64,000 nt of DNA from Macrostomum lignano. Taxonomy: Eukaryota. A program made the translations under genes and the position numbers. Below are positions 42,101 to 45,100 of this stretch, one piece after another (the stretch's first letter is position 1; the number at the start of each line of letters is the position of its first letter). The DNA is taken from positions 1 to 64,000 of the forward strand of contig NIVC01002823.1 of the NCBI GenBank assembly GCA_002269645.1, given 5' to 3'. The notes beneath the pieces are model-generated. The model was not told where the DNA came from and ran no database searches. It worked only from the letters and a program-made list of their open reading frames with translations.

Positions 42101-45100
42101 TTGGGATGTACTGAAGGCGTGAGGTGGGTGCAGGAAGGGGTTAGGATGAACTGAAGGCGTGAGGTGGGTGCAGGAAGGGGTTAGGATGAACTGAAGGCGT
42201 GAGGTGGGTGCAGGAAGGAGTTTGAATTAGATTGCTATTGTTCCTACAGTAAGAAATTGAAAATAATGGGGCTGGTGGCAATGAAGGAAAGAAATCAGTC
42301 GCTACAAAATAGTTCCTTCTGGCCTGCTATAAGCACAAAGCAGGTTTGGCAGTCCTCCCCCCTCAGATCAGCCGCTCCTCTTTAGGCGGCCGCAGCACCG
42401 CAGAAGCGGACGTCGCAGCCACTCGTTTCTGACTGTCGCCGCCGAACTCCAGGTTGCTGGGCCGGTACACTCCCGAGCCCTGGCGCCGGGTTCTGGCGTA
42501 CACGAAGCCACCCACGGAGGCCGAGACGGCAACGATGAGCACAACACACAGCGGCAGGCCCACTGCTAGGCCGATGTCAATGACGGAGCCTCCGTTAGCC
42601 GCAGTGGCGTTAGGCATGACGGTCGCAGGAGCTCTGGTGCTTTGACTGGGCCTTGAGCTGCTGCACACTCTCTTGCCGCTTGGGCTTGGTCGAGCTTGGC
42701 TAGAAATACCCGAGCCCAAATCAGCCCAGCTAATAAGGCGCTGCGCATTAATTTGAGGCCGAGTATGCAGTGCCGGCATTCAATTAGCATTTGCTGTATC
42801 GGAATGTGCCCTGTTCTGGACAGGTGACGGAGGGTCACGGGGGGTCACATGCACACGCATTATTTTTGCGCACCCGAGAATTTCAGTTTTACTTGTGTGC
42901 GTGCGAATTCGTTTTTTAAATACCGCCTTGTGCACTTTTGTTCGGCTCGCTGTCAGCCACACTGCCTGTTACTGAATCCTTTATTGAGATACCCCAGTCA
43001 GGGAATTAGAAGTTATTAAGTATATTCCGCCGAGTGTCTTCGTGCATTCAAATTACCGCCATTCTACAAAGCATTATTAAACCTTCAAAAAGAATTCATT
43101 CAGTGACTTCAAATGATTTATACGCTCAAAATTAATTAAAGATAAATGACTTCGGTAATCATGAAAATTTTCAATTTCTCTAGAACTACTGAAGTGACCC
43201 AGAAATGACACAGTGACCTAAAAAGGACACGGTGACCTAGAAATGTGACCCAGAAATGACTCAATGAACTAGAAACGACATGGTGACCCAGAAATGACTC
43301 GATAACCTAGAAATGATTCAGTGACCCAGAAATGACTCAGTGACCCAGAGATGACTCAGTGACCCAGAAATGACTCAGTGACCCAGAAATGACTCAGTGA
43401 CCCAGAGATGACTCTGAGACCCAGAGATGACTCAGTGACCCAGAAATGACTCAGTGACCCAGAAATGACTCGATAACCTAGAAATGACTCAGTGACCCAG
43501 AAATGACTCAGTGACCCAGAAATGACTCAGTGACCCAGAAATGACTCAGTGACCCAGAGATGACTCAGTGACCCAGAAATGACTCAGTGACCCAGAAATG
43601 ACTCAGTGACCCAGAGATGACTCTGAGACCCAGAGATGACTCAGTGACCCAGAAATGACTCAGTGACCCAGAAATGACTCGATAACCTAGAAATGACTCA
43701 GTGACCCAGAAATGACTCAGTGACCCAGAAATGACTCAGTGACCCAGAAATGACTCAGTGACCCAGAAATGACTCAGTGACCTAGAAATGACTCGATAAC
43801 CTAGAAATGACTCAGTGACCCAGAAATGACTCAGTGACCTAGAAATGACTCAGTGCCCCAGAAATGACTCAGTGACCCAGAAATTACTCAGTGACCCATA
43901 GATGAATCAGAGACCCAGAAATGACTCAGTGACCCATAGATGACTCAGTGACCCAGAGATGACTCAGTGACCCAGAAATGGTCTCAGCAACCCTAAACGA
44001 CTCGAGTTTCCACCCCAACGGTCCCCTCAGAAGCAGAGTCGAAGCCAAGACCCCACCTGATTCTTGTCCAGCTCGCAGTTCTTGTATTCCTGCTCGCCCT
44101 CCTGCTGAAATGTGACGATGACAAAGCCGACAAAGATGTTCACCATGAAGAAGGCGATCACAATGATAAAGGCGATGTAGAAGATGGCCATCGGCGGCCT
44201 GTTGTTGTAGATCCCGCCGCGGCCCTCGCTTGCCGAGTCGATGGACTTGTAGAGCAGGCTGCGGGGAGAGTAGATCGGAGTAGAGAGGGAGTAGATCGGA
44301 GTAGAGAGGGAGTAGATCGGAGTAGAGAGGGAGTAGATCGGAGTAGAGAGGGAGTAGATCGGAGTAGAGAGGGAGTAGATCGGAGTAGAGAGGGAGTAGA
44401 TCGGAGTAGAGAGGGAGTAGATCGGAGTAGAGAGGGAGTAGATCGGAGTAGAGAGGGAGTAGATCGGAGTAGAGAGGGAGTAGATCGGAGTAGAGAGGGA
44501 GTAGATCGGAGTAGAGAGGGAGTAGATCGGAGTAGAGAGGGAGTAGATCGGAGTAGAGAGGAAGTAGATCGGAGTAGAGAGGGAGTAGATCGGAGTAGAG
44601 AGGGAGTAGATCGGAGTAGAGAGGGAGTAGATCGGAGTAGAGAGGGAGTAGATCGGAGTAGAGAGGGAGTAGATCGGAGTAGAGAGGGAGTAGATCGGAG
44701 TAGAGAGGGAGTAGATCGGAGTAGAGAGGGAGTAGATCGGAGTAGAGAGGGAGTAGATCGGAGTAGAGAGGGAGTAGATCGGAGTAGAGAGGGAGTAGAT
44801 CGGAGTAGAGAGGGAGTAGATCGGAGTAGAGAGGGAGTAGATCGGAGTAGAGAGGGAGTAGATCGGAGTAGAGAGGGAGTAGATCGGAGTAGAGAGGGAG
44901 TAGATCGGAGTAGAGAGGGAGTAGATCGGAGTAGAGAGGGAGTAGAGGTTAGGGATCAGTGATTAGGGGTTGTTTTAGTGATGGTAGGATCAAAGTTACA
45001 ATGGGATTTCAGTGACAATGGCATTTCAGTGACAATAGGATTCATAGACAAATGGAGGATTGTATTCAGTGACAATGGGATTTCATAGACAAATGGAGGA

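Follow-up and report, generated by a model that had tools for sequence, protein, structure and literature searches.

A putative short Crumbs-type gene nested in a Cav1 calcium channel intron of Macrostomum lignano

An intact open reading frame (ORF) on the minus strand of Macrostomum lignano contig NIVC01002823.1 (assembly GCA_002269645.1) lies, in the same orientation, within an intron of an L-type Cav1 calcium channel gene. It occupies 42363-42779 of the window, the stretch of 64,000 nucleotides analysed here (positions 1 to 64,000 of the contig), and comprises 138 codons plus TGA; an internal ATG at 42617 opens an 84-residue product that ends in PPKEERLI, followed by the TGA. To judge from its sequence, the ORF very probably encodes a genuine Crumbs-family transmembrane (TM) helix and tail under coding constraint. 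On balance, and with less assurance, it is also likely to be an independently expressed 84-residue gene that lies within the Cav1 intron on its sense strand. The expression of this short Crumbs, its 5' and 3' ends, its binding partners and its function are what we infer from the features described below.

Features of the predicted protein

The proposed coding sequence (42363-42617, minus strand) consists of 84 codons plus the stop at 42363-42365, and was delimited by codon usage and by a Crumbs profile. At its N-terminus a regular-expression search finds an N-A-T sequon (residues 3-5, 42603-42611), predicted to be glycosylated, within a candidate ectodomain of about 15 residues. The core of the TM helix (residues 16-39, 42501-42572) reaches a Kyte-Doolittle maximum of 2.63 in a 19-residue window, as expected of a strong TM helix, and this region aligns with the TM segment of Crumbs last exons, including the juxtamembrane DIxLxVG. 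The tail carries the complete signature that defines Crumbs proteins, RxxxGxYxPS followed by a terminal ERLI (PMC5968619). All five motif residues of the FERM-binding site are present at tail positions 4-13 (42456-42485), and the tyrosine at position 10 and the glutamate at position 16 that are essential in this site (PMC4359734) are both retained. ERLI (42366-42377), a PDZ-binding motif of class II preceded by LRPPKE, forms the last four residues before the TGA, where the C-terminus of the Crumbs profile aligns with that of the ORF. The ORF coordinates, sequon, helix and tail that a preliminary description had read from the letters of this DNA are thus all recovered.

Neither the 84-residue nor the 138-residue version has a signal peptide or any other hydrophobic N-terminal segment. 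The 54 residues upstream of ATG 42617 contain no hydrophobic segment (Kyte-Doolittle maximum 0.07), and the unique DNA of the Cav1 intron yielded no mini-exon for a signal peptide. The TM helix is preceded by about 15 residues in the 84-residue version and by 69 in the maximal 138-residue frame.

The product starting at ATG 42617 would be an 84-residue single-pass membrane protein with an N-terminal ectodomain of about 15 residues, bearing one N-glycosylation sequon, and with a helix that would act as a reverse signal anchor. An N-out/C-in topology is expected because an aspartate stands on the N-terminal side of the helix and RTRR follows it, in keeping with the positive-inside rule. Of the two motifs in the 43-residue cytoplasmic tail, the juxtamembrane one may recruit FERM proteins of the Moesin/Yurt/Expanded type, and the terminal ERLI may bind the PDZ domains of Stardust/PALS1 and Par6. 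Such a protein could be a minimal determinant of the apical membrane, comparable to CRB3 or to the fly mini-Crumbs made of TM plus tail. Its mRNA would start within the intron, either from a promoter of its own or by spliced-leader (SL) trans-splicing at 42699 or 42740.

Membership of the Crumbs family

Because single-sequence searches are too weak for a tail of 43 residues, a profile was built from 35 database Crumbs last-exon peptides retrieved with the fly tail as bait, all of them from arthropods. This profile hidden Markov model (HMM) was run on 1894 six-frame ORFs from the window and fetched loci. It scored the ORF at 31.6 bits (E 1.2e-8) and the runner-up at only 7.8 bits; helix and tail are aligned through to the final residue in the profile and the ORF alike. 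For a search of a whole genome of several hundred Mb, the E value should stay below 1e-3. The comparison by hhalign gave a probability of 97.8 % (E 1.3e-12) over 70 columns reaching the C-terminus. The Crumbs-type helix and tail claimed by the preliminary description, which had itself suggested an HMM comparison of the tail with Crumbs proteins, are therefore upheld by the profile scores as well as by the full signature (RxxxGxYxPS, Y10, E16 and ERLI).

Searches with the single sequence were less informative. The tail alone, compared with the 177,635 sequences of PDB, matched solely Drosophila Crumbs (4WSI/4YL8), end to end, at E 0.79. The full 84 residues had no match in PDB, the 138-residue ORF had none in a word-indexed protein search, and a Pfam scan of the 138 residues returned nothing relevant.

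The tail, at 43 residues, is about six longer than the arthropod consensus owing to two small insertions in the linker; Crumbs tails usually have fewer than 40, although tail length is a descriptive trait and not a functional one. It reads QGSGVY where bilaterian tails have a TxGTY motif, with no threonine at positions 6 or 9 and only Ser7. The ORF contains no EGF or laminin-G repeats, and no cysteine-rich EGF-like frames are open on the same strand in the 21 kb upstream. The absence of these repeats, together with the departures from the consensus, identifies a short Crumbs of the CRB3 type, as opposed to the large canonical form.

Codon usage and the probable start codon

Codon usage was scored against 1587 codons of confident coding sequence in the window (tubulin, EF-hand and Usp genes and ten Cav1 exon pieces), which have a G+C content at third codon positions (GC3) of 0.86. 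The 84 codons from ATG 42617 have a GC3 of 0.75 and a log-odds score of +34.6 bits in their own frame (-35 and -66 in the other frames). Their relative synonymous codon usage (RSCU) score of 0.27 falls inside the range of the Cav1 exons (0.13-0.64). The 54 open codons before them (42618-42779) have a GC3 of 0.52, a log-odds of -40.5 in their own frame (-35.2 and -34.6 in the others) and an RSCU score of -0.50. Given these values and their lack of a hydrophobic segment, they are most likely 5' untranslated region (UTR). The signal in codon usage and GC3 periodicity is confined to the segment between ATG 42617 and the stop, in that frame only, and thus begins at 42617, in agreement with the 84-residue product without signal peptide that had been proposed.

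The context of the two candidate start codons differs: position -3 is G, a purine, at ATG 42617 and T at ATG 42779, which lies immediately 3' of an in-frame TGA. There is no ATG between 42748 and 42617, so ATG 42617 is the first genomic ATG after an acceptor at either 42699 or 42740; the ATG scan bears out the earlier statement to this effect for 42699. Further upstream on the minus strand, a 26-codon upstream ORF (uORF) occupies 42780-42860, and its TGA abuts ATG 42779 in the same frame. A stretch of TATTTAAAAAA lies about 65 nucleotides upstream of this uORF, around 42925.

The host Cav1 gene and its intron

The host intron (41391-44056, minus strand) is 2666 nucleotides long and separates the exon that encodes the end of the domain III pore loop and IIIS6 (44057-44258, ending CELDKNQ, 5' boundary approximate) from the exon that encodes the III-IV linker and IVS1 (41232-41390, ending ALAMK, 3' boundary approximate). 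The first of these exons was recognised by Pfam Ion_trans and both by alignment with Cav1.2. The upstream exon ends at 44057 with the donor CAG|GTGGGG, and the downstream exon begins at 41390 behind the acceptor CCAG|CGAAAG. Residues 1120-1238 of human Cav1.2 align with the joined exons without gaps at 180 bits; the L-type channels alpha-1C, 1D and 1S score clearly above Cav2 channels (118-130 bits), and the best database relatives of these exons are named L-type alpha-1C, 1D or 1S. This gapless match fixes the intron at 44056-41391 and indicates that the canonical channel needs nothing from it. The same-strand nesting of the ORF in the IIIS6/III-IV-linker intron of an L-type Cav1 gene, as first described, is thereby corroborated.

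Within the intron, the ORF sits in an island of about 970 nucleotides between two tandem arrays: a 19-nucleotide repeat of about 42 copies upstream (43193-43980) and a 40-nucleotide repeat of about 10 copies downstream (41811-42224), which any long 3' UTR would have to include. In the window and the fetched loci the island occurs only once, and an origin from a repeat or transposon was rejected for this reason. A non-coding RNA was likewise rejected, since Rfam finds no RNA family in the Cav1 intron.

The neighbourhood has a diverged second copy on contig NIVC01002813.1, with 91-97 % identity to the window across unique DNA, which fits the duplicated genome of M. lignano. An older, independent assembly is represented by two UniProt models of the M. 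lignano Cav1 channel, A0A1I8FGX9 and A0A1I8FJI4 ('Ion_trans domain-containing'). In these models the IIIS6 exon, the island and the IVS1 exon follow each other in the same order, which argues against a chimeric assembly join; the misassembly that the preliminary description had named as a possible source of error is not borne out. Mapped to the window at 38000-44200, both models jump among all three frames. They absorb the Crumbs-like island as channel exons and leave it through non-consensus donors after 42423 or 42432, and A0A1I8FGX9 starts exactly at 42699. Because of the frame-hopping and the non-consensus donors, they are taken as prediction artefacts of an indel-rich assembly and not as transcript evidence.

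Elsewhere in the Cav1 gene, two exon candidates in tandem (38238-38333 and 38048-38134, minus strand) each encode the end of the domain IV pore loop and the start of IVS6. They end in |GTGAGT and |GTGAGA, respectively, have the same phase before the exon at 35615-35704, and look like mutually exclusive exons. A0A1I8FGX9 wrongly joins both.

Signals for an independent transcript

Three AG dinucleotides between 42699 and 42812 are candidate 3' splice or trans-splice acceptors, located on the sequence and by mapping of the UniProt models. The AG at 42700-42701 would give an exon from 42699 that begins at codon position 3. The AG at 42741-42742 would give an exon from 42740, whose frame fits the phase-0 host donor after 44057, as had been stated. 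The AG at 42811-42812 would give an exon from 42810 and is the one used by model A0A1I8FJI4. The M. lignano trans-splice consensus is YTNCAG, and the SL ends in ATG (PMC8629364). The acceptor at 42699 is where the preliminary description placed it, but it was there called good, and as a TAG it falls outside this consensus. An SL joined at 42740 would bring its ATG in frame with the main ORF.

Overall, the signals for an independent transcript are weak, and they open a series of observations that weigh against an expressed short Crumbs. None of the candidate acceptors matches YTNCAG, and the intron contains no GTRAG donor. The 800 nucleotides that follow the stop are free of canonical poly(A) signals; the first ATTAAA past it (41530-41535) lies about 830 nucleotides downstream, some 140 nucleotides before the host acceptor, with no closer AATAAA. 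An SL joined at 42699 would start, at its terminal ATG, an out-of-frame uORF of 30 codons that runs across the start codon. The tail has 43 residues compared with the usual 37-40, and, with GSGVY in place of the bilaterian TxGTY motif, it lacks the aPKC sites. These sites are found in cnidarians and bilaterians and are absent in C. elegans; they are regarded as lineage-variable and not as defining (PMC5968619).

Some database results add to this side. The exact 138-, 111- and 84-residue products are absent from the gene calls on record for GCA_002269645.1. Exact-product look-ups of two Cav1 exon ORFs and of A0A1I8FJI4 likewise gave no match, and a Cav1 protein search found no M. lignano model among proteins of up to about 1.75 times the query length. 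An exhaustive HMMER search of 1.84 billion protein representatives produced three hits and, at E 0.001, no homologue outside M. lignano. Two of the hits are the UniProt models A0A1I8FGX9 and A0A1I8FJI4. The third (ENA ctg89582, 53-664) was rejected as a chance match: it is a repeat-derived ORF on a bacterial contig, adjoining genes for a BCCT transporter and a peptidase M19, with 42 % identity to the N-terminus and helix of the ORF. Conservation in a related flatworm, to which the preliminary description had looked for support, was not seen at the Cav1 locus of the tapeworm Hymenolepis, which contains no Crumbs-like ORF. A cDNA-like Cav1 contig from Logan also contains none, and no paper connecting Macrostomum with a Crumbs gene was found in the literature.

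Alternative explanations

Some of these negative results would be accounted for if the ORF were a non-functional relic, that is, a copied or stranded Crumbs last exon that is not expressed as a protein and has not yet decayed. Consensus splice, trans-splice and poly(A) signals are lacking nearby, the ORF is missing from the gene calls and no orthologue was found. Furthermore, the TM plus tail of arthropod Crumbs also occupies one last exon, so that the module could be copied as a unit, and the island is bracketed by tandem repeats. A relic is nevertheless rather unlikely. The frame is intact with every signature residue kept, host-like codon bias is limited to the exact segment from ATG to stop, and the region is retained in at least two genomic copies. 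Moreover, UniRef contains no further M. lignano protein with a similar TM plus tail from which the ORF could recently have been copied.

The remaining alternatives make the ORF part of a larger gene or transcript. As a 3'-terminal exon of Cav1, spliced in frame from 44057 to 42740, it would produce a channel cut after domain III and continued by 56 residues plus the TM helix and its ERLI tail. Both splice sites, the phase-0 donor and the in-frame acceptor, are indeed there, an intronic acceptor with a cis donor upstream favours cis- over trans-splicing in principle (PMC8629364), and the UniProt models thread the region onto Cav1 exons. However, the 41 bridging codons (42740-42618) are non-coding-like in the required frame (GC3 0.52, log-odds -40), and the acceptor at 42740 has a poor pyrimidine tract. 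The helix would also run from inside to outside, so that RTRR, the FERM motif and ERLI would come to lie on the extracellular side, away from their partners. The models, for their part, come from an error-rich older assembly and hop between frames. A fusion of this kind is thus improbable, and the preference of the preliminary description for a nested gene gains indirect support from the non-coding-like bridge and the misplaced RTRR and ERLI. It is quite improbable that a mini-Crumbs without a promoter of its own is cut from the Cav1 pre-mRNA by SL trans-splicing at 42699 or 42740, in competition with cis-splicing. In that case each primary transcript would yield either the full channel or the polarity determinant (plus a truncated channel RNA), and a splice-choice switch would couple excitability and apical polarity in the same cells. 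Any competition between the signals of the nested gene and channel splicing is speculation. The ORF could also supply the first exon of a short Cav1 isoform, with a transcript starting in the intron and a donor after 42423 (CGA|GTGGCT, phase 0) joined to 41390. The product would be a Crumbs-like TM helix followed by the III-IV linker, domain IV and the channel C-terminus, as in A0A1I8FGX9, which uses exactly this 42423-41390 join and begins at 42699. The junction is in frame and the topology consistent (TM out-to-in, cytoplasmic linker, IVS1), but the donor is weak and not GTRAG, and the perfectly conserved PPxEERLI-stop would be left unexplained. In addition, a lone domain IV has no known function and the model derives from the frame-shifted older assembly, which makes such an isoform very improbable. 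It is just as hard to credit that the ORF closes a large canonical Crumbs gene as its last exon, with EGF and laminin-G exons far upstream, interleaved with or beyond Cav1. Big Crumbs genes do end in this type of exon, the frame stays open for 54 codons upstream of ATG 42617, and AG dinucleotides usable as acceptors are present. However, this upstream segment is non-coding-like, the 21 kb upstream on the same strand contain only Cav1 exons and repeats, without EGF- or LamG-like frames, and the gene would have to be interleaved with at least 20 kb of Cav1 exons.

Genomic surroundings

Three compact genes follow Cav1 downstream on the same strand: an EF-hand protein (14616-15086), a Usp-domain protein (12495-12965) and the body of an alpha-tubulin (8412-9827, minus strand), whose initiator methionine is encoded by a mini-exon of its own. 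On the plus strand, at about 5894-6427, there is a protein kinase. Copies of all four occur on NIVC01002813.1 as well, with a Usp model of 191 residues there, compared with 157 in the window. The Cav1 introns and the intergenic DNA are full of long and very regular tandem arrays with periods of 19-41 nucleotides and up to 99 % identity (44268-44946, 45025-46016, 13284-13966, 54240-56034 and many others), which produce long spurious ORFs and strong GC skew.

Implications

The ORF is a believable, unannotated short member of the known Crumbs family and not a new kind of system. If expressed, it would be the smallest natural Crumbs described, with about 15 residues outside the cell, one helix and two tail motifs; the M. 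lignano ORF is thus possibly the smallest natural Crumbs. It would also parallel, as a natural protein, the engineered construct of TM plus tail by which fly crumbs mutants are rescued, and would be the second independent Crumbs without a signal peptide, after C. elegans CRB-3. With its expression, a polarity determinant would join the gene list of an organism that is a model for regeneration and in which transgenesis and RNAi are available. The case illustrates how ORFs of fewer than 100 residues are missed by transcript-based annotation or swallowed into host-gene models: A0A1I8FGX9 and A0A1I8FJI4 are unreliable in this region and should not be taken as channel sequence here.

Comparison with known Crumbs proteins

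As in other metazoan genes nested on the same strand, a small gene would lie wholly inside one intron of a larger host. Nesting on the same strand is rarer than in the opposite orientation, and together with SL trans-splicing it raises the question of whether a host pre-mRNA can feed a nested gene. No Crumbs protein is known to us to be functionally linked to a Cav1 channel, and the nesting is a curiosity of this locus unless a regulatory link to Cav1 is demonstrated.

Drosophila Crumbs has about 30 EGF and laminin-G repeats, a tail of 37 residues and aPKC sites at T6 and T9, none of which the ORF shares. Its tail (4WSI/4YL8) nevertheless aligns with that of the ORF from R1 to the terminal ERLI, with two short insertions in the linker of the ORF and GSGVY instead of TRGTY. 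The TM plus tail of Drosophila Crumbs alone rescues most crumbs phenotypes (PMC4359734), which makes a natural protein of such a design functionally plausible.

Vertebrate CRB3 has a cleavable signal peptide and about 120 residues. The M. lignano ORF lacks the signal peptide but is likewise small and single-pass, with a sequon, a FERM motif and an ERLI tail. In vertebrate CRB3 (CRB3a, the ERLI isoform), a short S/T-rich, N-glycosylated ectodomain is combined with a FERM motif and with an ERLI that binds PALS1 and Par6 (PMC4359734, PMC5968619, PMC2064851). The single-sequence searches, both word-indexed and by HMMER among the 1.84 billion representatives, did not link the ORF to CRB3.

The closest known protein is C. 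elegans CRB-3 (C35B8.4), an apical protein of 100 residues without a signal peptide (Waaijers et al. 2015, PMC4359734), so that a short Crumbs of this kind is already known. The apical position of CRB-3 has been shown, whereas the M. lignano protein is predicted here from its sequence. The latter is also shorter (84 residues, ectodomain of about 15), has a tail of 43 residues, is encoded inside a Cav1 intron and ends in ERLI where CRB-3 ends in EGLI. Common to both are a very short, domain-free ectodomain, the lack of a signal peptide, and a TM helix that would act as the signal for the endoplasmic reticulum and is followed by positive charges. Both also keep Tyr10 and Glu16 of the tail and lack the bilaterian aPKC threonines.

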